DNA of 28,417 nucleotides from Macrostomum lignano (GCA_002269645.1 NIVC01000987.1:1-28417), one strand, 5' to 3'. Positions 1,075 to 21,743 are shown, numbered from the stretch's first letter. Notes: generated by a model not told the origin, from the letters alone. Program-made: numbers and translations.

Positions 1075-1377
1075 TTAGTCCATCTCGCCGCCATCGAATC
1101 CCCGACTATAATCGTCTCGATCCGCATCAGCATGGCCATCTTCTTCGGCCTCTTCGCTGGAAATTCCAGCGCCGGAGAGAGTGTACAGGGCTCGGCCGAG
1201 CCACGACTGACGTCGCTGTGGCTGTTGCTGCTGCTGGCGACGGTCGTGCATGAAGTGCGACATTGGATCGCCCGGGTACGACGAGGCGCTGCCGCCTCCA
1301 ACGGCGCCGGCGCCGTCGCCAGATGAACGACCCTGGCGCTCCGTCTCGCTCACCGAGTAACCGCGCAGACGCTGGAA
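1075..1377 (-). CDS. Terminal coding exon of the BH3-only gene (FQRLRGYSVSE...RRQSWLGRALYTL...GEMD*)
   Basis: Acceptor ...ctcgctatgCAG|TTC at 1378/1377 follows a long pyrimidine tract. Phase 0 matches the upstream donor at 6154. It encodes 100 codons to TAA at 1077..1075. Confidence 0.8.
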   Translation of the reverse strand, partial: FQRLRGYSVSETERQGRSSGDGAGAVGGGSASSYPGDPMSHFMHDRRQQQQQPQRRQSWLGRALYTLSGAGISSEEAEEDGHADADRDDYSRGFDGGEMD

Positions 1378-4300
1378 CTGCATAGCGAGGGAGTGAGTGA
1401 GAGTGAGAGTGAGAGTGAGAGTCGGAGCGAGCGAGAGTGAGAGAGTGGAAGTGAGAGAGTGAGAGTGAGAGAGTAAGATTTAGACGGACAGAGTGAGAGA
1501 TGGAGAAAGCGAGTGACAGGAAGGAGCATAAATGTAGAGGCTGGACTAAAAAATGAAGCACGAGAATACTCGTAAAAGTTATACAAGGTTCTTATCTTAG
1601 TACCCAGAAACAAAATTTAAACAGATTCACAAACTTTTATCTGTCTAAAGCTCGCAACAGATTCACAAAAAAATTGTTAACCAAAAATTCATGTTCCTTT
1701 TTTATTACTTATAAGACACATGGCAAGTAGTATCATATGGAATTTCATAACGCACTATTAGTATTAGGCAAATCTTATCGCCAGGGTCCAGAGGTGGAAG
1801 TAGATTAAAAAAATTGCATTTCCAGGTAAGAATTTTGCACTACAGTCACGAGTTGGATTTATCAAAGCACTCTATAGAAGCTTTAACAGATTTAAACAAC
1901 ACGTATTGGACCCGTGCGCCGTGTGCCGAGGGTAGACTTCCATTGCACTTGACTTGCGCAGTGTTAAAAATCATCAGTCTCACTACAGATATGAAGCGCA
2001 GATACTTAGAATCAGGTGACTTAAATAACTATAAGATATACCACGTGAAGAGATTAGAGATCAGAACCATTTAGTTCTGGCTATACTATGCATACGCATA
2101 TATGCAAACTAAAATTGTCAAAAAGGCCATTTCCAAAAATAGACCCTGACGCCATGTCGCGAAGAGGGGGAGACCGGGCAAACGACAGGACACCCAGCTT
2201 AGCTGCTGTTTCCAGCGCAAACAAACTTTTATCCAGGGGCCAAGCACAGTCAGTCATCTTAGCTAAGATCAACAATTGAGACGCCAAATATACGCTCGTA
2301 CATTACGTTCGTTTATACAAAAAACATTTTGTTATTAAATTTAGAAGCAAGAATATACAGAACTACGCGTTGGTAACAGGTATGCATTTTTTTAGCGAAT
2401 CAACCTAATCACTGCTAGAGCACCCTGTGTGTCACCAATCACTGCTAGAGTTAATTCTCAGTGTCTTCAGATAAACATATTATACTTATAAATATTAATG
2501 TCACAATAGCCATAATCAAGAATTCAATAATTAATAAAGGACGCCAGGAACTTGTTTATTCACAAGTCTAAGAAAAGAACCCATGCTTATTCAAGTCTAT
2601 AAGCTACGAAATATTTTGGGTCAGCTGACTTCAGTCCAACCAGCCCACATATGGAATAAAAAATCAGCCAATGACAACGAAGGAGCAATGGAAGGTCAGT
2701 CATGCATTGGGAGAGAAATAGTGGGCGGGCGGTTTATCTCCCTCTCCCACTGGTTCCTGCAGTTCTTCTCTCTCTCTCAGCACGAAAAACCGCCACAATG
2801 TTGCACCGAATGAACTCCCCAATGCCACACATAGAATCCCGATACCGCATGTCTTTTTATACGTGTTTTTGATTAACTAAAAAAGTACGGGAAACTTCCA
2901 GTTTCTTAGAAGGTCAGTCGGGGGTTCGATTCTCGACCCACTAAGGAACAAATTGTGTCCTTGAGCAAGACGCTTAACTCTGCATTGCTTCAGTTCACCC
3001 AGCTGTAAAATGGGTGCCAGCATTAGCTGGGGTAGTTGAGGTAGCGCCGCACCTCAGGTCTGGTAAAGTTTAGAACCTGTAGGAAATTTGAGGGGTGGGG
3101 CCAACAAAGGCAATACTAAACCACCCCCCCCCCTGGTTTTTACCTTGAGCACTTGTAATAAAGCATTATTTTTTTAAATACCGAGTATAAAACAAAGTCA
3201 CGTGTCTCGCTGCTGAGGCGCTGAAGAGGTGGGGGTGGGCGCGAACCCTCCTCTCGCTCCTCTCTCTCCTACCACCCCTCACTCTCTTCCCCAATCGCTC
3301 ATTCATAAAAACAGGGCCAGTCTAGTATCTATCTCCCCTCTCCCTCTCTCTCGGCATAGCAACCCAATCAGAATACGAGTATACACAACTGCCGCAATCT
3401 CTTCATAAAAAAAGTATTCAGTATTAATATAGTCAATATTGCAAGGAATTAAACTAAATCCAGGCATTGGCACGTGACCGTGACATGCATGACAGGGTCG
3501 GGTTTAGTTTGGCAAGGGGAAGAGAAGCTGTGACGCATACTGTCTAACGTTGTCATCTTTCTTATCTTTATTAAAACAACTTCGTGTATGTCAGCCTCAT
3601 CATTCAATAAACACTTCTGTAGCAGGAGGAAACTCCGAATTCTGACCAATTAGGTCAATTTTATTACAGCACCGCTCTTTATGTTAAGATAATCTCACTC
3701 CTGTCTCAGGGTGAGTAGAAGATTCATATAATCTCACTCGTGTCTCAGGGTGAGAAAAGATTCTAATAATCTCACTCCCGTCTCAGGGTGAGTAGAAGAT
3801 TCTGATAATCTCACTCCTGTCTCAGGGTGAGAGAAGATTCTAATAATCTCACTCGTGTCTCAGGGTGAGAGAAGATTCGGATAATCTCATGCCTGATCTA
3901 TAGAAGAGGATTTTGAAGTTATCCTTCTAGAATATGAAGGCCCTAGATACTATTTGGGGCCCTGGATACTAAAAGAAGACTCCAGTTGATGAGAGTTTTT
4001 TATTTCCTGTTTTACGATTATTATTATTGCACATAAGAAGCATCGAATCGTGGAGGCATGTGAGGGCATCTGAGACGATGACCTTCACATGACCTTGAGC
4101 TGGAGCAATATTCTAATAATAATAAACAAAACTAAGTACGAGTTGAGACAAAGACCTACAGGGCCTGTTTTGATAAAAATTCAGCCTTGGCAACTGATAG
4201 TTGAGTGCACTGTACTCAAAACTGGACCTTTCATTTCAGGATTCTAAAATTGATTTTAGTCACGCTATATATACTAGTGCCAGGCTAAACTAAAATAAGC

Positions 4301-7300
4301 CTCAGGGTGAACTAAAATGAACCCCAGGCTAACCTAAAATGAACCTTAAGCTAACCTAAAAGGACTTCAGGCTAACAACCTAAAATGGATAAAATGGACC
4401 ACAAGCTAAACTACAATGAACTTCAGGCTAAACTAAATTGGACATCAGGCTAACCTAAAATGGACCTCAGGCTAACCTTAAATGGACCTCAGGCTAACCT
4501 TAAATGGACCTCAGACTAACCTTAAATGGACCTCAGGCTAACCTAAAATGGACCTCAGGCTAACCTTAAATGGACCTCAGGCTAACCTAAAATGGACCTC
4601 ACGCTAACCTTAAATGGACCTCAGGCTAACCTAAAATGGACCTCAGGCTAACCTAAAATGGACCTCAGGCTAACCTTAAATGGACCTCACGCTAACCTAA
4701 AATGGACCTCAGGCTAACCTTAAATGGACCTCAGGCTAACCTTAAATGGACCTCAGGCTAACCTAAAATGGACCTCAGACTAACCTTAAATGGACCTCAG
4801 GCTAACCTAAAATGGACCTCAGGCTAACCTTAAATGGACCTCAGGCTAACCTAAAATGGACCTCAGGCTAACCTTAAATGGACCTCAGGCTAACCTAAAA
4901 TGGACCTCAGGCTAACCTAAAATGGACCTCAGGCTAACCTTAAATGGACCTCAGGCTAACCTTAAATGGACCTCACGCTAACCTAAAATGGACCTCACGC
5001 TAACCTTAAATGGATCTCAGGCTAACCTAAAATGGACCTCAGGCTAACCTAAAATGGACCTCAGGCTAACCTTAAATGGACCTCAGGCTAACCTTAAATG
5101 GACCTCAGGCTAACCTAAAATGGACCTCAGGCTAACCTTAAATGGACCTCAGGCTAACCTAAAATGGACCTCAGGCTAACCTAAAATGGACCTCAGGCTA
5201 ACCTTAAATGGACCTCAGGCTAACCTAAAATAGACCTCAGGCTAACCTTAAATGGACCTCAGGCTAACCTTAAATGGACCTCAGACTAACCTTAAATGGA
5301 CCTCAGGCTAACCTTAAATGGACCTCAGGCTAACCTTAAATGGACCTCAGGCTAACCTAAAATGGACCTCAGGCTAACCTTAAATGGACCTCAGGCTAAC
5401 CTTAAATGGACCTCAGGCTAACCTAAAATAGACCTCAGGCTAACCTTAAATGGACCTCAGGCTAACCTTAAATGGACCTCAGACTAACCTTAAATGGACC
5501 TCAGGCTAACCTTAAATGGACCTCAGGCTAACCTTAAATGGACCTCAGGCTAACCTAAAATGGACCTCAGGCTAACCTTAAATGGACCTCAGGCTAACCT
5601 AAAATGGACCTCAGGCTAACCTAAAATGGACCTCAGGCTAACCTTAAATGGACCTCAGGCTAACCTTAAATGGACCTCACGCTAACCTAAAATGGACCTC
5701 ACGCTAACCTTAAATGGACCTCAGGCTAACCTAAAATGGACCTCAGGCTAACCTTAAATGGACCTCAGGCTAACCTTAAATGGACCTCAGGCTAACCTTA
5801 AATGGACCTCAGGCTAACCTAAAATGGACCTCAGGCTAACCTTAAATGGACCTCAGGCTAACCTTAAATGGACCTCACGCTAACCTAAAATGGACCTCAG
5901 GCTAACCTAAAATGGACCTCAGGCTAACCTTAAATGGACCTCAGGCTAACCTAAAATGGACCTCACGCTAACCTAAAATGGACCTCACGCTAACCTTAAA
6001 TGGACCTCAGGCTAACCTAAAATGGACCTCAGGCTAAACTAAAATGGACCTCAGGCTAAACTAAGCTACTAAAATAGACCTCAGAATACAATCATACTAA
6101 AGGAGAGAAATGAATATAATTTTTTAAGGAATTTTAGGTCTAAAAAAACTTACCACGAGAACTTCGCTGCGATTTTGCACAGACGACCTGCTGCTATCAA
6201 TCTCGTCACCAATGTGTCGAAGTCTCATAGCAACCATTTCGACGCTCTCTTCGCGTCGCATTTGCAGGCGCAACTGTTGAGCATCTTCAGGCATCACTGG
6301 CACAGACTGGCTGCGCACCCGGATGTCAACTACGGTGGTCTCCAGTAGAAGGTCTGGCAGCGGCTCCCGCTGGTTCAAAAGACTGCGAGCTGAGCAGAAT
6401 GGGGGGATTGTAGGTGGGGAATGAGTTAATCAAGAAATCCATAGCGGGTACTTATTAATAATTCATCTTCGGAATCTGTTAGAGAATATTACATTAAGGT
6501 CTTTTATTCAAATATATTGAGGTTTTTCCTTCAATTGATTGGGATCATTTCTTTGAATCGATCGGGATCATTTCTTTGAATCGATCGGGATCATTTCTTG
6601 GAATTGATTGGTATCATTTCTTGGAATTGATTGGGATCATTTCTTGGAATTGATTGGGATCATTTCTTGGAATTGATTGGGATCATTTCTTGGAATTGAT
6701 TAGGGTCATTTCTTGGAATTGATTAGGGTCATTTCTTGGAATTGATTAGGGTCATTTCTTGGAATTTATTAAAGTCATTTCTTGGAATTGATTAGGATTA
6801 TTTTTTGGAATTGATTAGGGTCATTTCTTGGAATTGATTAGGGTCATTTCTTGGAATCGATTAGGATTATTTCTTGGAATTGATTAGGGTCATTTCTTGG
6901 AATTGATTAAAATTATTTCTTGGAATTGATTAGGGTCATTTCTTGGAATTGATTGGGATCATTTCTGTGAATTTGATAATGCAATTTCTTAGAATCCGAT
7001 TAGTGAAATTTCTTAGAATCGATTGGGGTCATTTCTTAGATTTCAATTGATGCAATTTCTTAGAATCGATTGGGGTCATTTCATAGATTTCAATTGATAC
7101 AATTTCTTAGAATCGATTGGGGTGATTTTGACATTTTCTTAGAATCCGATTAGTGAAATTTCTTAGAATCGATTTGGGTTATTTCTAAGAATCTATTTGG
7201 ATCATTTTCTTAGAATACTATTTGGGTTATTTCTAAGAATCTATTTGGATCATTTTCTTAGAATACTATTTGGGTTATTTCTAAGAATCTATTTGGATCA

Positions 7301-10300
7301 TTTTCTTAGAATACGATTTGGGTTATTTCTAAGAATCTATTTGGATCATTTTCTTAGAATACGATTTGGGTTATTTCTAAAATTCTATTCGGATCATTTT
7401 CTTAGAATACTATTTGGGTTATTTCTAAGAATCTATTCGGATCATTTTCTTAGAATACTATTTGGGTTATTTCTAAGAATCTATTTGGATCATTTTCTTA
7501 GAATACGATTTGGGTTATTTCTAAGAATCTATTTGGATCATTTTCTTAGAATACGATTTGGGTTATTTCTAAAAATCTATTCGGATCATTTTCTTAGAAT
7601 ACTATTTGGGTTATTTCTAAGAATCTATTTGGATCATTTTCTTAGAATACGATTAGGGTTATTTCTAAGAATCTATTTGGATCATTTTCTTAGAATACGA
7701 TTTGGGTTATTTCTAAGAATCTATTTTGATAATTTTCTTAGAATACGATTTGGGTTATTTCTAAGAATCTATTTGGATCATTTTCTTAGAATACGATTTG
7801 GGTTATTTCTAAGAATCTATTTGGATCATTTTCTTAGAATACGATTTGGGTTATTTCTAAAAATCTATTCGGATCATTTTCTTAGAATACTATTTGGGTT
7901 ATTTCTAAGAATCTATTTGGATCATTTTCTTAGAATACGATTTGGGTTATTTCTAAGAATCTATTTGGATCATTTTCTTAGAATACGATTTGGGTTATTT
8001 CTAAGAATCTATTTGGATCATTTTCTTAGAATACGATTTGGGTTATTTCTAAAAATCTATTCGGATCATTTTCTTAGAATACTATTTGGGTTATTTCTAA
8101 GAATCTATTTTGATAATTTTCTTAGAATACGATTTGGGTTATTTCTAAGAATCTATTTGGATCATTTTCTTAGAATACGATTTGGGTTATTTCTAAGAAT
8201 CTATTTTGATAATTTTCTTAGAATACGATTTGGGTTATTTCTAAGAATCTATTTGGATCATTTTCTTAGAATCCAATTGGTGACATTTCTTAGAATCGAT
8301 TGGTGAAATTTCTTAGAATCGATTGGGGTCATTTCTTAAAATCTATTTGGATCATTTTCTTAGATTTCAATTGATGCAATTTCCTAAAACCAATCGAGAT
8401 CACATCTCGGGAGCCATAAACGAGAGGTCACATTTTTATCGCGGTCACCTTAACTTATCATCCATTGATTTGGGGTCAAATTTATGCTTAAAAATCACAG
8501 AATCCTACTATCTACCGCCCAAAAATTAACAAACATCAGCCATAATAACTGTTATAAACAATGTCGCAGTTATAACCATGTCAAGGTCACGATATAGTAT
8601 AACCCAAGATAGATAAAAGCTTTACTACATTGTTAAAACAAACATTGCTATTCGGCACGTTGGACAAAACTATAGGCCGCTCACTGTTTAGGAATTATAA
8701 CTACGTCTCAGTCTGGCTTTCTGTGTCTGCATTTCGAATTTCCCCCTCTCTCTCATCTCTTCTCTCCTTTTATCTCTAATATTCTCTCCCTCTCTCCTCT
8801 ATTCCTCTCCTCCCTCAACTGGCCCGCAGCCATGAGCTGGATTGTTTAGCAGGCCCTTGAGGTAAAGAATTTTAACAACCCGCAACGCTTTTAAATGAAG
8901 GGTCAGAGGGAGTTAAAACAAAGACGCTCCTGTCAACTTTGCTTCGCTTCTCTGTTATTTTATTTCATTTGCATATTTCCAACTGTCGTTCCAGTGCCGC
9001 CTATTCATAAACAGCTTAATCACGTGACCGGAGACGACCCCAGAGTGACACCTGCTTCTAGCTGAAATTTATTCAAAGCATTTATGAGTCTGCCTGCCTT
9101 TGTGCTCACTGCTTATACAAACAGACGCTATAGACAATGGTACTTACTCTGCTTACTCATGGAGATATAAGCTCTAGAACCAGTGTGATCTGGTAGCAAT
9201 TCCTCTGCACTACATCTAGTGACTCTGTGCCCTGTCTAGTGACTCTGCAATCCATCTAGTGACTCTGTGCCCTGTCTAGTGACTCTGCAATCCATCTAGT
9301 GACTCTGCCCTGTCTAGTGACTCTGCAATCCATCTAGTGACTCTGTGCCCTGTCTAGTGACTCTGCAATCCATCTAGTGACTCTGTGCCCTGTCTAGTGA
9401 CTCTGCAATCCATCTAGTGACTCTGTGCCCTGTCTAGTGACTCTGCAATCCATCTAGTGACTCTGTGCCCTGTCTAGTGAATCTGCAATCCATCTAGTGA
9501 CTCTGCAATCCATCTAGTGACTCTGTGCCCTGTCTAGTGACTCTGCAATCCATCTAGTGACTCTGTAATCCATCTAGTGACTCTGCACTCCATCTAGTGA
9601 CTCTGTGCCCTGTCTAGTGACTCTGCAATCCATCTAGTGACTCTGTACTCCATCTAGTAACTCTGTGAACCATCTAGTGACTCTGCACTCCATCTAGTGA
9701 CTCTGTACTCCATCTAGTAACTCTGTGAACCATCTAGTGACTCTGCAATCCATCTAGTGACTCTGCACTCCATCTAGTGACTCTGTGCCCTGTCTAGTGA
9801 CTCTGCAATCCATCTAGTGACTCTGTGCCCTGTCTAGTGACTCTGTACTCCATCTAGTGACTCTGCACTCCATCTAGTGACTCTGTGCCCTGTCTAGTGA
9901 CTCTGCAATCCATCTAGTGACTCTGTACTCCATCTAGTAACTCTGTGAACCATCTAGTGACTCTGCAATCCATCTAGTGACTCTGCACTCCATCTAGTGA
10001 CTCTGTACTCCATCTAGTGACTCTGTACTCCATCTAGTGACTCTGCACTCCATCTAGTGACTCTGTGCCCTGTCTAGTGACTCTGAAATCCATCTAGTGA
10101 CTCTGTACTCCATCTAGTAACTCTGTGAACCATCTAGTGACTCTGCAATCCATCTAGTGACTCTGCACTCCATCTAGTGACTCTGTACTCCATCTAGTGA
10201 CTCTGTACTCCATCTAGTGACTCTGTACTCCATCTAGTGACTCTGCACTCCATCTAGTGACTCTGTGCCCTGTCTAGTGACTCTGCAATCCATCTAGTGA

Positions 10301-13300
10301 CTCTGTACTCCATCTAGTAACTCTGTGAACCATCTAGTGACTCTGCAATCCATCTAGTGACTCTGCACTCCATCTAGTGACTCTGTACTCCATCTAGTAA
10401 CTCTGTGAACCATCTAGTGACTCTGCAATCCATCTAGTGACTCTGCACTCCATCTAGTGACTCTGTGCCCTGTCTAGTGACTCTGCAATCCATCTAGTGA
10501 CTCTGTGCCCTGTCTAGTGACTCTGTACTCCATCTAGTGACTCTGCACTCCATCTAGTGACTCTGTGAACCATCTAGTGACTCTGCAATCCATCTAGTGA
10601 CTCTGCACTCCATCTAGTGACTCTGTGCCCTGTCTAGTGACTCTGCAATCCATCTAGTGACTCTGTGCCCTGTCTAGTGACTCTGTACTCCATCTAGTGA
10701 CTCTGCACTCCATCTAGTGACTCTGTGCCCTGTCTAGTGACTCTGCAATCCATCTAGTGACTCTGTACTCCATCTAGTAACTCTGTGAACCATCTAGTGA
10801 CTCTGCAATCCATCTAGTGACTCTGCACTCCATCTAGTGACTCTGTGCCCTGTCTAGTGACTCTGCAATCCATCTAGTGACTCTGTGCCCTGTCTAGTGA
10901 CTCTGTACTCCATCTAGTGACTCTGCACTCCATCTAGTGACTCTGTGAACCATCTAGTGACTCTGCAATCCATCTAGTGACTCTGCACTCCATCTAGTGA
11001 CTCTGTGCCCTGTCTAGTGACTCTGCAATCCATCTAGTGACTCTGTGCCCTGTCTAGTGACTCTGTACTCCATCTAGTGACTCTGCACTCCATCTAGTGA
11101 CTCTGTGCCCTGTCTAGTGACTCTGCAATCCATCTAGTGACTCTGTACTCCATCTAGTAACTCTGTGAACCATCTAGTGACTCTGCACTCCATCTAGTGA
11201 CTCTGTACTCCATCTAGTAACTCTGTGAACCATCTAGTGACTCTGCACTCCATCTAGTGACTCTGTACTCCATCTAGTAACTCTGTGAACCATCTAGTGA
11301 CTCTGCAATCCATCTAGTGACTCTGCACTCCATCTAGTGACTCTGTGCCCTGTCTAGTGACTCTGTACTCCATCTAGTAACTCTGTGAACCATCTAGTGA
11401 CTCTGCAATCCATCTAGTGACTCTGCACTCCATCTAGTGACTCTGCAATTCATCTAGTGACTCTGCACTCCATCTAGTGACTCTGTGCCCTGTCTAGTGA
11501 CTCTGCAATCCATCTAGTAACTCTGCAATTCATCTAGTGACTCTGCACTCCATCTAGTAACTCTGCACTCCATCTAGTAACTCTGCAATCCATCTAGTGA
11601 CTCTGCACTCCATCTAGTAACTCTGCAATCCATCTAGTAACTATGTGAACCATCTAGTGACTCTGCACTCCATCTAGTAACTCTGCAATCCATCTAGTGA
11701 CTCTGCACACCATCTAGTGACTCTGCACTCCATCTAGTAACTCTGCAATCCATCTAGTGACTCTGCACTCCATCTAGTAACTCTGCAATCCATCTAGTAA
11801 CTATGTGAACCATCTAGTGACTCTGCACACCATCTAGTGACTCTGCACTCCATCTAGTACGAGCTAACTCTGCAATCCATCTAGTAACTCTGCAATCCAT
11901 CTAGTGACTCTGCACTCCATCTAGTGACTCTGCAATCCATCTAGTGACTCTGCAATCCATCTAGTAACTCTGTGAACCATCTAGTGACTCTGCACTCCAT
12001 CTAGTGACTCTGCACTCCATCTAGTGACTCTGCACTCCATCTAGTGACTCTGCACTCCATCTAGTGACTCTGCACTCCATCTAGTGACTCTGTTCCCTAT
12101 CTAGTGACTCTGTTCCCTATCTAGTGACTCTGTTCCCTATCTAGTGACTCTGTTCCCTATCTAGTCACCTCTTGTGCGCCCCTTGTGGCGCCCCTTGTGC
12201 GCGTTTAATTAGCTAACTAGTAACCAATTTATTAAAGAATTGCTGAATATTAATACTTACGATTGCACCTATTGCGCAGATACTTCAGACGACGAGTATT
12301 ACACGTACATATATACATATCGTAGAAAGCGATATTCCTAATGAGTCATTCAGTTTCACTATACTATATACACTGAAAGGTCTTTAGTCTAGACAATAAA
12401 ATAATAGTACTGCAGTACTAGATCCACACATTCATATTTACATAGCTGCACGGACACACGTTCAGCTAGCTGGTATTATTAATAAAATGGGAAAATTCGA
12501 AATATACGCTCCTATCAACGAACAACAGTGCAACAGTGAATATGCCCGTAGCCAAATAATTAATAGTACTACAGAGTCCCTTAACACCGTCTATATATGT
12601 ACGAGTAGACCAGACAAAGGGGTCGAAACAACTTTTTTTTACCTTAAAGCGCCTGAAAAATAATTAATCTATACCTCATGGATGCGGGCCAGATAAGAGA
12701 GAAAAATAGTTTGAATAGAGGAGAGAGAAATTAGAAAAGAAGGGATGAGTGATAGGAGAGAAGATATGAGATGAAATAAGGGATGAGAGAAGAGATGAGA
12801 GAGGAAGAGAGAGGGAAGAGAGAAGAGAAGCGGGTAGAGTAGAGAGGGGAGAGACAAGAGAGGAGAGGGGAGAGGGGAGAGAAGAGAGTAGTGGAGAGAG
12901 AAGAGAGTAGGGGAGAGAGAAGAGAGTAGGGGAGAGAACAGGGTAGAGAGGAGAGAGAAGAAGGTAAAGAGGAGAGAGGAGAGGTTAGAGAGGAGAGAGG
13001 AAAGAGGAAAGAGGAGGGAAGAGAGAAGAGACGAGAGAGGAGACAGGAGGGAAGAAAGAAGAGAGGAGAGAGTAGGGAGAAGAGAACAGGGGAGAGAGAA
13101 GAGAGGAGGGGAGAGAGAGAAGAGAGGAAAGGGGAGAGAAGAAAGGAGAGGAGAGAGAGAAGAGATTAGGGGGAGAAAGAGGGTAGAGAGGATTAGGGAG
13201 AGAGGAGAGAGTACAGGAGAGAGGAGAGAAAAGAGGGTAGAGAGAAGAGAGCTGAGAGAAGAGACATCAACCTTAAGCGGGCCAGATTCCTATTGTGAAA

Positions 13301-16300
13301 TTTCAAAGGACGCGAAGGCATGGGGCCCACGGGCCGGAGTTTGCCAACCCCTGGGCCTGGTACAGTCAACTATAGCACACAGCTGTGCACGCACTTCAAA
13401 TGCGCTATGAAAAAAAGAAACAACAAACCCTCTAAGATGCACAACTGTACCGAAGCAACATGAGTGCAGGTGCACTAGATTCGGTCTGCGCAGCGGAGCG
13501 TCCTATAAATACATACTAATTCACCGATAAGAGCAATAACTGTTTATGCACTGGCGTTGTGTTGATATTGACTCAAACTCTACTGTATTCAACTTTCAGG
13601 AACAGTAAGTTTAACCTGTCTAAAACCGAAAAAAATTACAAATTTGAAGCCAAAATTTTGAACATTAAAGAAATGTCAGTTTCACACATACTAAATCGAG
13701 AATCCCATGATCCCAAAAATTCCCAAATCAAGAATTCTAAGATTCCAATTAAAAATCCGAATTCTAAAATCCCATGATCCCAAAAATTCCGAAATCAAGA
13801 ATTCTAAGATTCCAATTAAAAATCCGAGTTCTAAAATCCCATGATCCCAAAAAATCTGAAATCAAGAATCCTAAGATTCGAATTAAAAAACCGAATTCTA
13901 AAATCCCATGATCCAAAAAAAAATTCCCAACTCAAGAATACAATGATTCAAAATCGAGAATCCCACGATCCCAAATCGAGAATCCCACGATCTCAAATCG
14001 AGAATCCCACGATCTCAAATCGAGAATCCCATGATCCCAAATCGAGAATCCCATTATCCCGAATCGAGAATCCAATTATCCCGAATCAAGGATCCCATGA
14101 TCCCAAATCAAGAATCCCATTATCCCGAATCGAGAATCCCATGATTCTAAATCAGGAATCCCATTATCCCGAATCGAGAATCCCATGATTCTAAATCAGG
14201 AATCCCATTATCCCGAATCGAGAATCCCATGATTCTAAATCGAGAATCCCATTATCCCGAATCGAGAATCCCATTATCCCAAATCGAGAATCCCATTATC
14301 CCGAATCGAGAATCCAATTATCCCGAATCGAGAATCCCATGATTCTAAATCAGGAATCCCATTATCCCGAATCGAGAATCCCATGATTCTAAATCAGGAA
14401 TCCCATTATCCCGAATCGAGAATCCCATGATTCTAAATCAGGAATCCCATTATCCCGAATCGAGAATCCCATGATTCTAAATCGAGAATCCCATTATCCC
14501 GAATCGAGAATCCCATTATCCCGAATCGAGAATCCCATGATCCCAAATCAAGAATCCCATGATCCCAAATCGAGAATCCCATTATCCTAAATCGAGAATC
14601 CCATTATCCCAAACGAGAAACCTATGATCCCAAATCGAGAATCCCATTATCCCAAACGAGAAACCCATGATCCCAAATCGAGAATCCCATGATCCCAAAT
14701 CGAGAATCCCATTATCCCAAACGAGAAACCTATGATCCCAAATCAAGAATCCTTATCCCGACTCGAGAATCCCATGATCCTAATGAACAATGCCCCCGAT
14801 TCAAGTATGCAGTGATCCCCATAAAAGCTGCATCGAATTTCAAACAAATATTTCATGGTTAAAATTCAACTTAAAGCAGGGAAATTTCGCAAAGAGCAAG
14901 ACTTCACTGTATTTTCAGGTCACCCTAATTAACAAAACATAGGGTACAGGTTCGGCGAGGTCAAAAAAGGCAGGTGAAAATTTGAGTGGGACACATGGAA
15001 TGTCAACAAGTTTGGGAAGAAAGCTTGTCAGCGGCGCCTGTTACAAGCCGTATTATTTTCCTAATTTGATTGATTGACAGACAGTTAAAGAAGTCGAATT
15101 TTGTTTCAAAAAACACAACTGAAATCATAAACTAACCATGCACATCGCGCTTATCTCCCTGCAAGATCGGGGTCTGATAAACAAGATAATATCTACAAAG
15201 CGCATCACTGAATTATAGATTGACACTAGAAAATTGACACAACAAAGGAATGCAACGTTTTGGCTTTCTGTTGTTGTTGCTGTTGTAAAATAAACAAAAC
15301 TCAGTCTTTGGTGTATGAATACAGGAGGGCCAAGATTACATAATTAGATAAAATACTTCAAATGCTAAATGGCCACTTCCCAAACTAGGAAAAAAGCTGT
15401 CCATGAACTAGTAAATGGCCACTTCCCAAACTAATAAATGGCACTCCCCAAACTAATAAATGGCACTCCCCAAACTGGAAAATGGCACTCCCTAAACTGG
15501 AAAATGGCACTCCCCAAACTAGAAAATGGCACTCCCTAAACTGGAAAATGGCACTCCCCAAACTGGAAAATGGCACTCCCCAAACTGGAAAATGGCACTC
15601 CCCAAACTAGAAAATGGCACTCCCTAAACTGGAAAATGGCACTCCCCAAACTGGAAAATGGCACTCCCTTAAACTGGAAAATGGCACTCCCTTAAACTGG
15701 AAAATGGCACTGCCTAAACTGGAAAATGGCACTCCCCAAACTAATAAATGGCACTCCACAAGCTGAAAATGGCACTCTCCAAACTGGAAAATGGCACTCC
15801 CCAAACTAATAAATGGCACTCCCCAAACGGGAAAATGGCACTTCCCAAACTAATAAATGGAACTCCCCAAACTGGTAAATGGCACCCCCAAAACTAGAAA
15901 ATGACACTCCCCAAACTAATAAATGGCACTCCCCAAACTAGAAAATGGCACTCCCCAAACTAGAAAATGGCACTCCCCAAACTAAATAAAGGCACTCTCC
16001 AAACGGGAAAATGGCACTTCCCAAACTAATAAATGGCACTCCCCAAACTAATAAATGGCACTCCCCAAACTAATAAATGGCACTCCACAAGCTGAAAATG
16101 GCACTCTCCAAACTGGAAAATGGCACTCCCCAAACTGGAAAATGGCACTCCCCAAACTGGAAAATGGCACTCCCCAAACTGGAAAATGGCACTCCCCAAA
16201 CTGGAAAATGGCACTCCCTAAACTGGAAAATGGCACTCCCCAAACTGAAAATGGCCCTATCCAAGTAAAACATAGCACTCGAGATGACTTAGACCGTAGA

Positions 16301-19300
16301 TTATGCCCTGCCACTCTTATTAGACAAGGTAATTAGTTTATACTATAAAAAAACTTATTAATAAATGGAAGACAAAAAACTCACAAGCTGACAACAAAGA
16401 TTCGCTATAATTATCTCCATTAGAAGTCGAATGTTCGAATACATCATCCGCATCGTCAGCTTCCGAATCTGATGATTCCAAGCCAAATATGACTTGTTGA
16501 TGCTGCTGTTGTTGATGCTGAGACGGCATTGCGAATGAAACACGGCCTGTTTTTAACCTATCCACCTGCCCAGTCAGTCCCGCATGCGAGACACAACATT
16601 TATATATATACACATGCGGAAAGGAAGAAGAGAGCGAAAAGAGTGGATAGAAAAGAAAATTTCTTAAATTGGCACAATGTCCAATAAATGTTCATTTTGA
16701 GACAGAAATAAAAGTAAAGGGTGGCGCCACTGGCCACGAGTGGTCAAGAGAGACCTGCTGCCTACCAAGAGAGAGAGAAAGGGGGGAGAGATTAAAAATA
16801 GAAAATTAGCTTTATTATATAAAGAATTTATACTTGATATTAATAATAAATTTTCATACTTATTCCATCAATTTTTCATAATTTTATTAAGATTACTGAA
16901 ATTTAAAAACTTGCTAAACAAAGGTTCGTTAACAACAGGTTGGGGGTTAGGGCTGGGGGTGTATAGTATAACCTTCAACGCTTGTCCACAAATTTCAAAT
17001 ATAGTTATGGCTTTCGCTAATAACCCTGGTCCCTGGATCCATCCAGGGGCAAAGCGGCCGCACGCGGTGCCCGGGTGCGCGGTGAATCCAAATCTATCTT
17101 GATAAACTTAACCTGCGATGACGTTAAACTGGACCCTGTTAAAAATAGAACAACCAGTTTTGACTACTACTAACTATATGTACGATTATGCGTAGTGCTT
17201 GCCTGTTTAGCGTTTTTGGTGTTGGCGAGGCCTTGACGAAATGTTTTAATTAATCATTTACTACAGCTTTCGACACCCCATTAGATTCCGAGATCTGACA
17301 CCCCCATTAGATTCCGAGACCTGACAGCCCCATTAGATTCCGAGATCTGACACCCCCATTAGATTCCGAGATCTGACACCTCATTAGATTCCGAGATCTG
17401 ACACCTCATTAGATTCCGAGATCTGACACCCCCATTAGATTCCGAGATCTGACACCCCCATTAGATTCCAAGATCTGACACCCCATTAGATTCCATTAGA
17501 TTCCGACATTATAGATTCCAAGATCTGACACCCCCATTAGATTCCGAGATCTGACAGCCCCATTAGATTCCGAGATCTGACACCCCCATTAGATTCCAAG
17601 ATCTGACAGCCCCATTAGATTCCGAGATCTGACACCCCCATTAGATTCCAAGATCTGACACCCCATTAGATTCCATTAGATTCCGACATTATAGATTCCA
17701 AGATCTGACACCCCCATTAGATTCCGAGATCTGACAGCCCCATTAGATTCCGAGATCTGACACCCCCATTAGATTCCAAGATCTGACACCCCATTAGATT
17801 CCATTAGATTCCGACATTATAGATTCCGAGACCTGACACCCCCATTAGATTCCGAGACCTGACACCCCCATTAGATTCCGAGATCTGATACCCCCATTAG
17901 ATTCCAAGATCTGACACCCCATTAGATTCCATTAGATTCCGACATTATAGATTCCGAGACCTGACACCCCCATTAGATTCCGAGATCTGACACCCCCATT
18001 AGATTCCGAGACCTGACACCCCCATTAGATTCCGAGAAACTACGCAAAAAGATTATAAGAACCCATTCTAACATGGATTCTAAACATGACCCCTGCAGCG
18101 GATAACAACATTGTCCTTAAAAAACTGACCTGTGCCTTGCCTTGTTAGGTTAAAAATTTACATGTGTAAAATGAAAATTACAAAACATCGGGTGAAGAGA
18201 GCGCGGCCTTAATTGCCTAAATGATGACATAATGAAGTGTAATGATTAATCTGTCAGTAGCAAAGGGCGTAGCCAGAGGGGGTGGAGGAAGGGGGCAAAA
18301 TGTCCCCACTTTAACATTAAGTAAAAAAATCAATTATGGATAGTGGATACGCTGTCTGGAATCATGATGGGAGACGGTGCATCCTTAGTGGTTCTTTCAT
18401 TCACACTACTGAATCATCTTATTTTCAACAGAGGCCCATCCATAAAAGTGCGTCAGCTCAGAAGGGGCTCATTTACATTACAAACCACCCCATTAAAACC
18501 TGTACACAGACTTGTACACATTTTAATGACCGAAAAGAAACTAAATTTGTTTTGACAATAATAATAAATAATAATACTACAATGAACGACAGGACAGACA
18601 AACAAGGACAAGATGACAAATAGGCGGCGATCGCGATCACAAATTTTGGGAACGCAGAGGCAATTAAATTGTCACGTGACCTAATAGGGTCTGGGCTAGA
18701 GGGGGGATGGGGCGGGGTGGCAAAATAGAATAGACACGATAGCCACCCCACTCCGGCCTCAATCCCCGCCCGAGTCGGGGCCGGCAATTTTCACACCAAA
18801 ACAGACAGCTCTAATGTACGGCGTGTGAATTTGTTAGATCTTTTATGGGGGCGGTGGGCGGCGGCGGGCGGCTATTTCTTTGAACAAAAATCAAAGAACA
18901 GAATAAAGTCTTAACCACGCCGTCCGCCGTAACTATTATTAAAGGGATCATCATTTACTTAAGATAAAAAGGCAAAAACATTTAAACATATTAGTTAGGA
19001 CTTAGGACTTGGATGTAAGGAGTAACTTAGTCAGGGTCAGAGGAGAGGCGATAAACAACACTCAACTGGTGCAGATGAACTAAAACTCCGTAAGCAAGCA
19101 AGCAATTATATATTTCGAAATCGAAAATAATCAACAATGAAAAGCAGCTCTAATAGCCATAATCTAAGAGCCGTTTTTAGATTAGACGCATGTCTAGACC
19201 ACAAAAAAGAATGACTATAATTAGAACCTGGCAAACCGGTCGGACAGACAGACAGACAGAGTAAACTGAGTGACAGAGCTGGCAATATGACTATTATACG

Positions 19301-21743
19301 GGTGTAGTGTATTCGTCACTTGTTTGTTTTTTGTCTTTCTTGTCAGATACTCGTAATAGGGCGTTAAGGCGTTGCCCCTGTGCCCCTGGCGCGTCCAACC
19401 CTCACACACACGCAGATTGCAAGAGCCTTATTATTTAGTTTATTAGTCTACCGAATCACGTGATAAAATCTATTTATAGTAAGTATGTCCCAACTAGGCT
19501 AGGGTCACCTTACAGGGCAACAAGTCTAGACAACTATAAATGACGCCGCTTATCTTACTTATTAGATACAAATATACATAATCATTCACAGGTTAGGCTA
19601 GCTCATTAGAGAACAAAAAAGCTCAATAACATTTAACTTGCACCCCCCAAAAAATAAGGTGCCGCAGTGTCCTCGAATTAAGGTGATATCTTAATTTCAA
19701 TTAACACTTTTTTGTAGGTGTAGAGGCAAGGCATTCTTATAGATTAAACCCGATATAAAATTTGTTATCAATTATTAACATGCATAAATTGTACCTGCCT
19801 ATACGTAATTTTGGGGCCTTGGGCTACACTTAATTAACAGTTTAGTTGTACTAATGCGTTGGTTAAAAAATTTAAAATAATTCGCTAATATAGTTAAGCC
19901 AGGTGCGTATGCACTGCTGTCAACACTACATTTTTATATGAAGGCTAACATTATCTATCACAGGTAAATGTCAAAATTATTAATCTACTGGAGACTGTGG
20001 AGAGTGCCAATGCCAAAATGGCACGGGGAGTGCCAGAATGAGACTGGGGGTGGAGTGCCAGAATGAGACTGGGTGGAGTGCCAGAATGAGACTGGGGGTG
20101 GAGTGCCAGAATGAGACTGGGGGTGGAGTGCCAGAATGAGACTGGGGGTGGAGTGCCAGAATGAGACTGGGTGGAGTGCCAGAATGAGACTAAGAGAGTG
20201 CCAGAATGATACTAGGGCCTAGGGGTGAGTACCAGAAGGTTCATAAACTCAGGGAGTGTCAGAATGAGACTTATAGTAGAGTCTATACTCTATAGAGTAT
20301 CAGGCCAGAATGCAAGAACCAGAATGGCACTATCTGTTCCAGAGTAATTATAATAATAAGTGCAGTATGAACTTTATTCAAACAAAAAGTACAATAAACA
20401 GAAGCTTTAAATGTAGCTTTAGATTTTTATGCCCCCGTTTTAGAATTTAGACTAATGCCAGATTGAAACACGAAATCGTAATTTTTCTGCATTCAAATTC
20501 TAAGAAGCCAAAAATGAAACCATCAATTAAAAAGTACCAAATGTACTTTATAAAATTCGTTTGTTAAAAGAAAAAAACGCACTCAGTGACCTTGCTGTCT
20601 TCCTTCCTTATCATACACATGAGCTGACCTAATTCTTGACCAAGACCAACCCCTCTCATTTCCACACTACAGGCCATAGAGATGTTTAAATGACACTCAA
20701 TTAAAAGTGCAAGCAAACAAATTTAATTAGGAAATATCGATAGAAAGAAGGAAGAAACCCCCGTGTCACGCGGTTGAACCGCTTTAACGTCATGTCATGT
20801 CACGTGATCAACATGTGAGTTGTGAGCATTCCTAGAATAGAGCCATAAAATGTTCCCCCGCCCCTAGTCAGCTCTTTCTCCTGTGCTCATGCTCATGTAC
20901 TTTTAGAATAGAAAATAATTAACCCAGAAACCTTAATAACTCACCACCCGAACGGGAGGCAGCAACGTAAGCAACTTCTCGATCTGCAGCAGAATTAGGG
21001 CCGCCTCCTAGAAGGCTTTGCTGGGCCTCGAGGTCTGCTGCTTCATCTGCTGCTGCTGCCTCTTCTGGCTCTGGCAGATCGGCCATGGGTACAGACGGCG
21101 GTCGATATGGATAATAATATTGATGATGATGATTCTGATAGTGCAGATGGTAGCCTGAGGCGAGATGAGGCGATAGCTGTCTCATTGTTGGAGCAGACGA
21201 TGACAGCATGACAGGCTGGGGACTAACAGGTCTAAAAGTGCCAGGCGGTGGCTGCTGCTGCTGCTGCTGTTGATGATGAAGCGGCGGTGGGCTAGGCAAT
21301 TGTAGTCGCAAATCTTCCATGCTCATTTGAAATTGCTCCTGCTGCTGTTGATCAGATGTTGATGTCCCAGCGGCTGCTGCTGCTAAGGCGGTGTTCATCA
21401 TCAGCGGTGAGTCAGTCTGATACCCGCTATCCATGCCGCCGCCGCCTCCGGCGCCGTGTCGACGACGCCTGGCATTATTATAATTGTAGCTATCCGGATT
21501 TGATACTGGCGTGCTCCATTCTAGCGGCGGACCCCGAGGACTAGTAGTGGCCTGGGTTGAGCCGCCGGCGCTGCCGCCACGACTGCCAATGCCAGCGTCA
21601 ACTGCGGCTGCTATTGGTAAACTGCCAGCGCTAGGACTGCCTCCGCTGCCGCTGGCACCGTCGCCAAGTTCAAATGTAACCTCGGAGTCCACATTTACCA
21701 GCATGTTGTTGTTTTCGTTGACGTTATTGTTATGATGCTCCAT
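1075..21743 (-). CDS. BAD: Spliced gene model: BH3-only pro-apoptotic Bcl-2 family protein, BAD-like; join(21743..20945, 6389..6154, 1377..1075), 445 aa
   Basis: The three GC-rich open exons join in frame through canonical GT-AG sites (799+236+303 = 1338 nt = 445 aa plus stop; phase 1 then phase 0). Motif order is RVRSQSVP, BH3 (VAMRLRHIGDEI), RLRGYS, RRQSWLGRAL, with no transmembrane tail, which parallels vertebrate BAD. The BH3-only call is well supported; BAD orthology (and the symbol) is inferred from motif order only. Confidence 0.65.
1389..1500. repeat. (GAGAGT)n hexamer repeat forming the polypyrimidine tract of the last intron
   Basis: It reads (CACTCT)n on the transcribed strand, immediately upstream of the acceptor at 1378. 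Confidence 0.85.
2915..3060 (+). mobile_element. 5'-truncated tRNA-derived CORE-SINE (MIR-like core)
   Basis: Pol III B-box GGTTCGATTC at 2923-2932 is followed by GTGTCCTTGAGCAAGACGCTTAAC...CTTCAGTTCACCCAGCTGTAAAATGGG. This aligns by eye with the MIR/CORE domain (GTGACCTTGGGCAAGTTACTTAAC...CTCAGTTTCCTCATCTGTAAAATGGG, recalled consensus). Confidence 0.75.
3690..3889. repeat. 38-39 bp minisatellite of imperfect palindromic units (5 full copies plus a partial)
   Basis: AATCTCAC starts at 3691, 3730, 3768, 3807, 3845 and 3883; each unit contains TCTCAC...GTGAG(A/T). Confidence 0.9.
4290..6085. repeat. 22-bp satellite (TGGACCTCAGGCTAACCT[A/T]AAA), about 80 copies
   Basis: Period 22 (TGGACCTC at 4461 and 4483), highly homogeneous centre with degenerate flanks; it ends about 70 bp from the exon 2 donor. 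Confidence 0.97.
6154..6389 (-). CDS. BH3-containing middle coding exon (ARSLLNQREP...IRVRSQSVP...VAMRLRHIGDEIDSSR...SEVLV)
   Basis: Acceptor ttctgctCAG|CT at 6390/6389 (phase 1) and donor GTG|GTAAGT at 6154/6153 (phase 0). LRHIGDEID at 6222..6196 fits the BH3 consensus h1-xxx-L-xx-h3-G-D-x-h4. Confidence 0.88.
6533..8385. repeat. Composite minisatellite: 23-bp monomer grading into a 48-bp dimer (2x24), rich in TTCN3GAA
   Basis: The 23-bp period is seen at 6541/6564. The 48-bp unit ATTTCTAAGAATCTATTTGGATCATTTTCTTAGAATACGATTTGGGTT runs about 7180-8270. Confidence 0.96.
9213..12165. repeat. 20-bp satellite (CATCTAGTGACTCTGCAATC and variants), about 148 copies with higher-order structure
   Basis: Register is unchanged from 9301 to about 11860; five recurring sequence variants are visible. 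Confidence 0.98.
12695..13265. repeat. Purine-only low-complexity tract (GA/GGA/GAA rich)
   Basis: About 570 bp almost exclusively A/G, with sparse T and C. Confidence 0.9.
13277..13353 (-). mobile_element. Terminus of a non-autonomous hAT (Charlie-like) DNA transposon
   Basis: The minus strand reads CAGGGGTTGGCAAACTCCGGCCCGTGGGCC from 13353, resembling hAT-Charlie ends (CAGGGGT..CAAACT followed by GGCCC motifs). The opposite end and 8-bp TSD were not convincingly found. Confidence 0.5.
13694..14782. repeat. Minisatellite: 67-bp trimeric unit grading into a 22-bp monomer (AATCGAGAATCCCATTATCCCG)
   Basis: AATCCCATGA occurs at 13701, 13768, 13835 and 13902 (period 67); the period is 22 from about 13950. 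Confidence 0.93.
15367..16257. repeat. 22-bp minisatellite (AAAATGGCACTCCCCAAACTGG), about 39 copies
   Basis: The period is directly visible; it explains several repetitive ORFs at 15385-16336. Confidence 0.96.
16385..16529 (-). CDS. Alternative coding exon of the BH3-only gene (MPSQHQQQQHQQVIFGLESSDSEADDADDVFEHSTSNGDNYSESLLSA)
   Basis: ATG at 16529 with a purine at -3, and a strong donor T|GTGAGT at 16385/16384 in phase 1, identical to the exon 1 donor phase and compatible with the 6389 acceptor. Composition (polyQ, acidic/Ser) resembles the other exons. It could instead start at a weak acceptor at 16546. Confidence 0.6.
16560..16625 (-). promoter_or_regulatory. Candidate TATA promoter for the alternative first exon
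   Basis: The minus strand has TATATATATAAA at 16610..16599 and an NRF1-like CGCATGCG at 16581-16588, about 70 nt upstream of the ATG at 16529. Confidence 0.35.
17272..18037. repeat. 26-bp minisatellite (CTGACACCCCCATTAGATTCCGAGAT) with a recurrent variant block
   Basis: Period 26 (17295 and 17321). The variant CCATTAGATTCCATTAGATTCCGACATTATAGATTCC recurs four times near 17481, 17661, 17789 and 17918. Confidence 0.95.
18660..18880. promoter_or_regulatory. Intronic CpG-rich GC-box/E-box cluster
   Basis: GTCACGTGAC at 18671-18680, GGGGCGGGG at 18709-18717, CCCCGCCC at 18764-18771 and GGGGCGGTGGGCGGCGGCGGGCGG near 18848. Confidence 0.4.
20027..20275. repeat. 23-25 bp minisatellite (GAGTGCCAGAATGAGACTGGGGGTG)
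   Basis: About 8 good copies and 2 degenerate copies. Confidence 0.9.
20945..21743 (-). CDS. First coding exon of the BH3-only gene (MEHHNNN...DSGYQTDSP...RPPSVP...ASRSG)
   Basis: Long GC-rich ORF with a strong Kozak context (aaaagATGg) and donor G|GTGAGT at 20945/20944 in phase 1 (799 nt). It encodes a Gly/Ala/Gln/Pro/His low-complexity, disordered-type sequence. Confidence 0.82.

Follow-up and report, generated by a model that had tools for sequence, protein, structure and literature searches.

A candidate BH3-only-type protein with a BAD-like motif layout in the flatworm Macrostomum lignano

The locus described here raises two questions: whether a disordered, lineage-restricted flatworm protein that carries a BH3 sequence and an adjoining survival-kinase site is a functional BH3-only protein, and whether its resemblance to vertebrate BAD reflects descent. 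The gene lies on the minus strand, at positions 1075-21743, of a 28,417-nucleotide (nt) stretch of the Macrostomum lignano genome (contig NIVC01000987.1, bases 1-28417, assembly Mlig_3_7), which we call the window; all positions are those of the window and are identical to those of the contig. A preliminary description of this DNA had proposed a cryptic three-exon gene for a 445-amino acid (aa) protein, to be read as a BAD orthologue or a convergent BAD-like protein. We consider the chances evenly balanced that the product is a functional, lineage-specific protein of BH3-only type, and a BAD-like logic that would have been reached by convergence, not by common descent, is a reasonable hypothesis. 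Five properties of the predicted protein bring the chances up to this level, namely the lack of a recognisable domain, the disorder, the lineage restriction, the containment of the BH3 within a single exon, and the perfect Akt/14-3-3 site that adjoins it.

In this paper, we use isoform A for the 445-aa product of exons 1a, 2 and 3, and isoform B for the 227-aa product of exons 1b, 2 and 3; residues are numbered in isoform A unless stated otherwise. The coding exons and the motifs on which the argument turns are as follows.

20945-21743, minus strand: exon 1a; ATG at 21743, 266 codons plus 1 nt, donor G/GTGAGT, phase 1
16385-16529, minus strand: exon 1b, apparently an alternative first coding exon; ATG at 16529, MPSQHQQQQHQQVIFGLESSDSEADDADDVFEHSTSNGDNYSESLLSA, donor T/GTGAGT, phase 1; found by tblastn with PAA93152.1
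6154-6389, minus strand: exon 2, in both isoforms; entered in phase 1 and ending at a codon boundary (the next intron is phase 0)
1075-1377, minus strand: exon 3; phase 0, TAA at 1077-1075
6298-6321, minus strand: RVRSQSVP, aa 290, 29 residues upstream of the BH3; found by a regular-expression scan
6199-6234, minus strand: BH3, VAMRLRHIGDEI, aa 319, with h1 V, h2 L, h3 I, G, D and h4 I; wholly inside exon 2
1371-1351, minus strand: RLRGYS(V), aa 348, a second Akt-type site
1218-1186, minus strand: QRRQSWLGRAL, aa 399, in which RRQSW is a site of the protein kinase A (PKA) type

The BH3 motif, its companions and chance

The sequence VAMRLRHIGDEID (V-A-M-R-L-R-H-I-G-D-E-I-D) satisfies all positions of the BH3 consensus Phi1-Sigma-x-x-Phi2-x-x-Phi3-Sigma'-D-Z-Phi4-Gamma, as defined in PMC10107002, and it also fits a PROSITE-type BH3 pattern; the 26-residue peptide around it is REESVEMVAMRLRHIGDEIDSSRSSV. 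When a 38-residue peptide was compared with 177,635 distinct PDB sequences, E values below 1 were obtained only for two chains of the human PXT1 BH3 (0.006 and 0.011; PDB 8gsv and 7wjh). This match comprises 13 identities in 21 residues, including AM.LRHIGD.ID (REESVEMVAMRLRHIGDEIDS versus MEEIIHKLAMQLRHIGDNIDH). The PXT1 BH3 peptide binds both Bcl-xL and Bak in crystal structures, and activates Bak directly (PMC10298792). For a comparison over the 16-residue core, we used 12 known BH3s; identity is highest with BIK (8/16), followed by BIM and BAX (7/16 each), and stands at 4/16 for BAD. The preliminary description had called the motif a textbook BH3, and the consensus, the PROSITE-type pattern and the nature of the best PDB match all bear this out.

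Upstream of the BH3, the site RVRSQSVP satisfies two consensus sequences perfectly, that of Akt/AGC kinases (RxRxxS followed by a hydrophobic residue) and that of mode-I 14-3-3 binding (RSxSxP), both motif definitions being established knowledge. Exon 2 encodes this site together with the entire BH3. The C-terminus is acidic, with no hydrophobic anchor or transmembrane (TM) tail, and the translation reproduces the full series given in the preliminary description, in the same order: RVRSQSVP, BH3, RLRGYS, QRRQSWLGRAL and acidic tail. When the window is translated in all six frames, the PROSITE-type BH3 pattern is matched exactly once, as is RxRSxSxP. On the strength of these motifs, control of the protein by Akt and 14-3-3 is possible, although we would call it doubtful at present.

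Both isoforms appear to be intrinsically disordered. Disorder-promoting residues make up 69% of the protein, and an AlphaFold2 prediction for the paralogue described below, made from the single sequence and so to be taken as weak evidence, is essentially disordered (mean pLDDT, the predicted local distance difference test score, of 43). In that model helices are placed on the BH3 (VEMVAMRLRSIGDEIDS) and on a polyglutamine (polyQ)-QRRQSWLGRALYTLSG segment, and confidence is low elsewhere. A Pfam search gave no convincing domain, the two sub-threshold matches (AIMA-like_N and CHD1-like_C) being chance matches well under their cut-offs.

The gene is also Macrostomum-restricted, as far as such searches can detect. 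When 1.84 billion representative proteins were searched exhaustively by phmmer with the peptide from exons 2 and 3, one true relative was obtained, PAA93152.1 (240 aa, partial); it shares 97% identity with the query over its last 185 residues and has a different N-terminus. Two further matches were judged spurious, as they belong to internally repetitive proteins that match through many short repeats (FMHGRS..QQQ; EF-hand-like LRRVFxEID). Word-indexed searches with the full-length protein and with exon 1a were saturated by low-complexity words (8000 candidates), and the exon 1a run, which did not recover its own protein, is uninformative. Orthology with Drosophila sayonara, which we also considered, was rejected, in that the host is a flatworm and sayonara belongs to the coiled-coil family PTHR21974; the phmmer search gave no Drosophila or PTHR21974-type match.

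If the BH3 is functional, the protein might act as a survival-kinase-gated flatworm BH3-only switch with a Bim/PXT1-like BH3, arisen independently of BAD or, less likely, as its deeply diverged orthologue; we put this more specific proposal forward tentatively. In the unphosphorylated state, the BH3 would fold into the groove of flatworm Bcl-2-like survival proteins and/or of Bak, and this engagement would lead to permeabilisation of the mitochondrial outer membrane and release of cytochrome c. Basophilic kinases of the Akt or PKA type would phosphorylate RVRSQS(V)P, RLRGYS and RRQS(W), and phospho-S77 (isoform B numbering), with or without S135 and S185, would then serve for docking of 14-3-3, which would hold the protein sequestered and inactive. 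The alternative N-termini may provide for differential regulation. Such a protein would basically combine the logic of BAD with a Bim/PXT1-like, and probably promiscuous, BH3.

The strongest alternative is that we are dealing with a real orphan gene whose disordered product carries its BH3-like stretch either by chance or as an amphipathic helix without apoptotic function, as might be found, for example, in a phosphorylation-regulated 14-3-3 client or scaffold. We regard this as a serious contender, with a probability somewhat short of an even chance, and several points weigh on its side and against a BH3-only function. With a position-specific scoring matrix built from the 12 known BH3s, the motif scores 14.85, which is inside their leave-one-out range (4.1-31.4), but among 2e7 random positions, 17 score as well. 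A BH3 this good is expected by chance about 15-20 times in a flatworm-sized proteome, and for this reason the motif alone is no evidence of function. In composition shuffles of this protein, the BH3 pattern arises at 1.25e-4 per protein and RxRSxSxP at 1.5e-3 per protein, and the companion motifs were picked after the fact. The protein has no homology to any known BH3-only family, and classical BH3-only proteins do not typically have an N-terminus as long and low in complexity as that of isoform A. No orthologue outside M. lignano was found, either in the phmmer search or in a metagenome scan with the exon 2 peptide. The only sequence that can be compared is the paralogue within the species (exons 93-97% identical in nucleotide sequence), which is too similar to inform on the motifs. 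Partners with the Bcl-2 fold are reported for flatworms and would have to be assumed for M. lignano itself. Finally, BH3-like motifs without BH3-only function are on record: the motif of ApoL2 reportedly does not behave as that of a BH3-only protein (PMC4611713), and for many human BH3-like peptides that bind in vitro, no death function is established (PMC4072508).

Other observations count against a chance helix. By chance, only about 0.01 proteins per proteome should combine a top-quality BH3 with a perfect Akt/14-3-3 site and have no recognisable domain, by an estimate that is itself post hoc. Moreover, within exon 2 it is around the motif that helix is predicted most strongly, and the PDB entry closest to it in sequence is a genuine BH3.

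A separate feature of the BH3 is seen at its end, where DEID/S (6196-6207, minus strand; aa 328-331) forms a DExD site of the caspase-3/7 type, which may be coincidental. The BH3s of BAX (DELD) and BIK (DEMD) show an equivalent arrangement.

The question of descent from BAD

The layout of the protein resembles that of BAD in several respects. Both are disordered and have no TM tail, and both carry an RxRSxSxP Akt/14-3-3 site N-terminal of the BH3. C-terminal of the BH3, both have further basophilic serine sites, followed by a Q[MR]RQS..W segment. Isoform B (227 aa) is also of similar size to BAD (168 aa). In contrast, the core of the motif is LRHIGDEI (IGDE type) and not LRRMSDEF (MSDE type), with glycine in the position of the serine that is targeted by PKA in BAD, and the spacing between motifs is 1.5- to 3-fold larger. 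The flatworm protein further differs in its acidic C-terminal tail, its polyQ tract, its optional 266-aa low-complexity N-terminus and its lack of lysine.

A true BAD orthologue, inherited from the bilaterian ancestor and diverged past detection by sequence, would account for the shared order of motifs (RxRSxSxP, BH3, basophilic serine and Q[MR]RQS..W) and for the missing TM tail, and candidates seeded with BAD, Bim and Bmf are given in one review for echinoderms and possibly Lophotrochozoa (PMC8998228). Direct comparison points the other way, and we consider this explanation very improbable. The preliminary description had suggested a profile search against the Bcl-2_BAD family; with hmmscan, PF10514 gave no match at E<=10 for queries of 445, 227, 179 and 69 aa, whereas human BAD, used as a positive control, scored 316.7 bits end to end. 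BLASTP against human BAD gave E=0.17 over a 24-residue patch, in which the RxRSxS sites are aligned and the BH3s are out of register. When the two M. lignano isoform B sequences were aligned by hhalign with human and mouse BAD, the probability was 0.19%; the best local pairing in this comparison, a point in favour of common descent, places VVDIRVRSQSVPVMPEDA on BAD AVEIRSRHSSYPAGTEDD (8/18 identical). The BH3 core is shared with BAD at only half as many positions as with BIK, glycine replaces the regulatory serine, and the spacing is off by the margin given above. No intermediate homologue was seen among the representative proteins or in the metagenome collection. In the flatworm gene the BH3 exon lies between a phase-1 and a phase-0 intron; for the intron phases of BAD, a literature search yielded no source. 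Nematode, schistosome and vertebrate BH3-only members are not linkable by sequence in the reviews (PMC8998228, PMC11463336), and BH3-only proteins as a whole are regarded as polyphyletic (PMC10107002, PMC11463336). Of the two readings offered in the preliminary description, orthology with BAD is therefore not supported by the profile, BLASTP and hhalign results or by the BH3 core; as regards the BAD-like layout, the motif order, the upstream RxRSxSxP and the absence of a TM tail stand, and homology in sequence is not detected.

The gene, its isoforms and its paralogues

Joining of exons 1a, 2 and 3 (799 + 236 + 303 nt = 1338 nt) gives one open frame of 445 aa with a TAA stop. The donors, G/GTGAGT for exon 1a and G/GTAAGT for exon 2, are near consensus, both acceptors are CAG/, and the introns are in phases 1 and 0. 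The N-terminal region from exon 1a is of low complexity, with an abundance of Gly, Ala, Gln and His, and exon 3 contains, in order, RLRGYSV, a Gly/Ser linker, the polyQ tract, QRRQSWLGRAL and the acidic tail. The product is identical over its full length (100%) to an M. lignano "hypothetical protein", BOX15_Mlig026279g2/g1 (PAA49021.1, PAA73904.1; UniProt A0A267DID4). The Mlig_3_7 gene set was derived from RNA-seq (StringTie/TACO), a de novo transcriptome and TransDecoder, and not ab initio (PMC5730564). Because the annotation is based on transcripts, the annotated protein provides indirect transcript evidence for both splice junctions. The three-exon, 445-aa model of the preliminary description is thus upheld, by its GT-AG introns and by the annotated protein, and the gene is not cryptic, as had been claimed, since it was already annotated as a hypothetical protein. 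A literature search on the identifiers Mlig026279 and Mlig023455 found no paper. What is new here is the reading of the motifs, and not the gene itself.

The gene appears to have two alternative first coding exons. Exon 1b, which was located by tblastn of PAA93152.1 (BOX15_Mlig023455g1) against the window, lies inside intron 1 and was overlooked in the earlier inventory, which was correct for its three exons and incomplete as a set. When spliced in frame to exon 2, it gives isoform B, with a short acidic N-terminus, and this form is the one annotated at the paralogous locus (Mlig023455). The size and simplicity of isoform B are typical of BH3-only proteins. Use of exon 1b as a 162-nt in-frame cassette (16385-16546, with AG at 16548-16547; 499-aa product) is arithmetically possible but doubtful, because the acceptor has no polypyrimidine tract, and its status as an alternative first exon rests on the same observation.

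A further peculiarity is that the 445-aa product contains neither lysine nor cysteine, as is also the case for the 451-aa paralogue and for exon 1b. The base composition by codon position predicts 2.7% Lys, and the probability of finding none is about 5e-6. Human proteins that lack lysine include PUMA and p14ARF. A lysine-free protein has no canonical ubiquitin acceptor sites, which may bear on the control of its turnover. In the long isoform only, exon 1a encodes DSGYQTDS (21420-21440, minus strand; aa 105-112), which we take to resemble a beta-TrCP phosphodegron of the DSGxxS type.

The locus is present in three copies in the assembly: the window (L002) and two others, L001 and L003. Over 13 kb, L001 and the window are 99.2% identical, with exons 2 and 3 100% identical; L001 is allelic or a very recent duplicate, and as such uninformative for selection. 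L003 is a paralogue that is colinear with the window and lies on contig NIVC01000032.1 (1.46 Mb). Its introns, where aligned, are 83-92% identical to those of the window, and its exons 1a, 2 and 3 are 93-97% identical (exon 1a 95%; exon 2 96.5%). Exon 1b, which is kept in both L001 and L003, is nominally 87% identical to its L003 counterpart, owing to a single 15-nt polyQ indel. All exon indels relative to L003 are multiples of three (in exon 3 the sole indel is 18 nt, in the polyQ tract), and the splice sites and both isoform reading frames are intact. The ratio of non-synonymous to synonymous substitution rates (dN/dS, Nei-Gojobori) is 0.185 (exon 1a 0.16; exons 2+3 0.23), based on 26.5 synonymous and 16.5 non-synonymous differences, and this supports a functional coding gene under purifying selection. 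In L003, the BH3 has one change, H to S, at a non-contact position, and RVRSQSVP is identical.

The notion that the locus is no functional coding gene at all, but an artefact that joins fortuitous open reading frames (ORFs) across repeats, or a pseudogene, would suit the very long repeat-rich introns, the low-complexity exon 1a and the lack of a homologue beyond the species, but is very improbable given that the transcript-derived annotation contains the same protein for two loci, and the short isoform for another, that consensus splice sites are kept in the paralogue, and that the exons combine indels of 3n nt and a low dN/dS with higher identity between paralogues than the introns (exon 1b being the nominal exception).

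The two introns that separate the coding exons of isoform A are as follows.

6390-20944, minus strand: intron 1 of isoform A, 14.6 kb; holds exon 1b and large minisatellite arrays
1378-6153, minus strand: intron 2, 4.8 kb; holds a 22-bp unit x76 at 4392-6059 and a 38-bp array at 3689-3889

The arrays of intron 1 include a 20-bp unit x147 at 9203-12152, which is the largest, and a 48-bp unit x25 at 7159-8364. Altogether, minisatellite arrays (periods of 19-26, 38 and 48 bp) account for approximately 49% of the 20.7-kb gene span, in agreement with the repeat-filled introns noted in the preliminary description. The same arrays are found at matching relative positions in L003 (4300-22000; window 3689-20271), and because the positions correspond in the paralogous locus, the arrays predate the duplication. 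In exon 1b (16480-16529, minus strand), the window and L001 (15536-15728) differ by a polyQ/His indel of five codons (15 nt), and the L001 form is that of L003.

Directly downstream of the 3' end of the gene, positions 1-900 of the window consist of a strand-skewed, purine-rich satellite made up of (AG)n and a 21-bp AGAGTAGACAG unit (GC skew +0.63). The canonical AATAAA is absent from the 215 nt past the stop codon (read down to position 860). A 369-aa ORF at 7197-8306 on the plus strand is the 48-bp tandem repeat in translation (FGLFLRIYLDHFLRI unit) and no gene, and is the source of spurious matches to loose BH3 patterns. In a scan of the window for other genes and RNAs, there was no Rfam or tRNA match, and the remaining long ORFs were translations of tandem repeats.

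Implications and known systems

Flatworms keep a mammalian-like, Bak/Bcl-2-dependent release of cytochrome c, and apoptosis has a central part in how they regenerate and renew their tissues. Bak and Bcl-2-like proteins occur in flatworms, and BH3-only proteins are known from schistosomes (PMC11463336, PMC8998228), with Bak being the sole effector reported in platyhelminths (PMC11463336). If the protein described here is a functional BH3-only protein, it would be an upstream sensor of stress or survival signals for flatworm apoptosis, in a regenerating species in which transgenesis is available, and it would provide a clear case of convergence upon BAD-type gating by phosphorylation and 14-3-3. 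If the switch also operates as proposed, the control that growth factors exert on mitochondrial apoptosis by way of a BH3-only protein would be either an ancient trait or one that was invented repeatedly. If, on the other hand, the motif is non-functional, the protein would serve as a cautionary example of chance BH3-like linear motifs in disordered proteins.

With regard to individual BH3s, the L-x-x-I-G-D-E-Phi-D signature is shared with BIK, BIM and BAX. The remainder of the protein differs from all three in having no TM anchor, from BIM in having no dynein light-chain motif, and from BAX in having no Bcl-2 fold. The BH3 of PXT1 is the closest sequence in the PDB, and PXT1 is likewise a noncanonical, lineage-restricted BH3-only protein (PMC10298792); the likeness is confined to the BH3, and homology is not implied, PXT1 being mammalian, testis-specific and equipped with a peroxisomal targeting signal.

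To our knowledge, very few BH3-only proteins have been described outside vertebrates, namely EGL-1, CED-13, the Hydra candidates, the schistosome proteins and sayonara (2023). The schistosome BH3-only proteins were reportedly described by Lee et al. in 2011. Sayonara (Drosophila CG14044) belongs to the PTHR21974 family and has two coiled-coil domains (PMC10107002), whereas the flatworm protein is without such domains. Like sayonara, EGL-1 of C. elegans and schistosome BH3-only protein, however, it is lineage-specific and invisible to sequence homology, and the literature regards BH3 motifs as short linear motifs that evolve by convergence (PMC10107002, PMC8998228).

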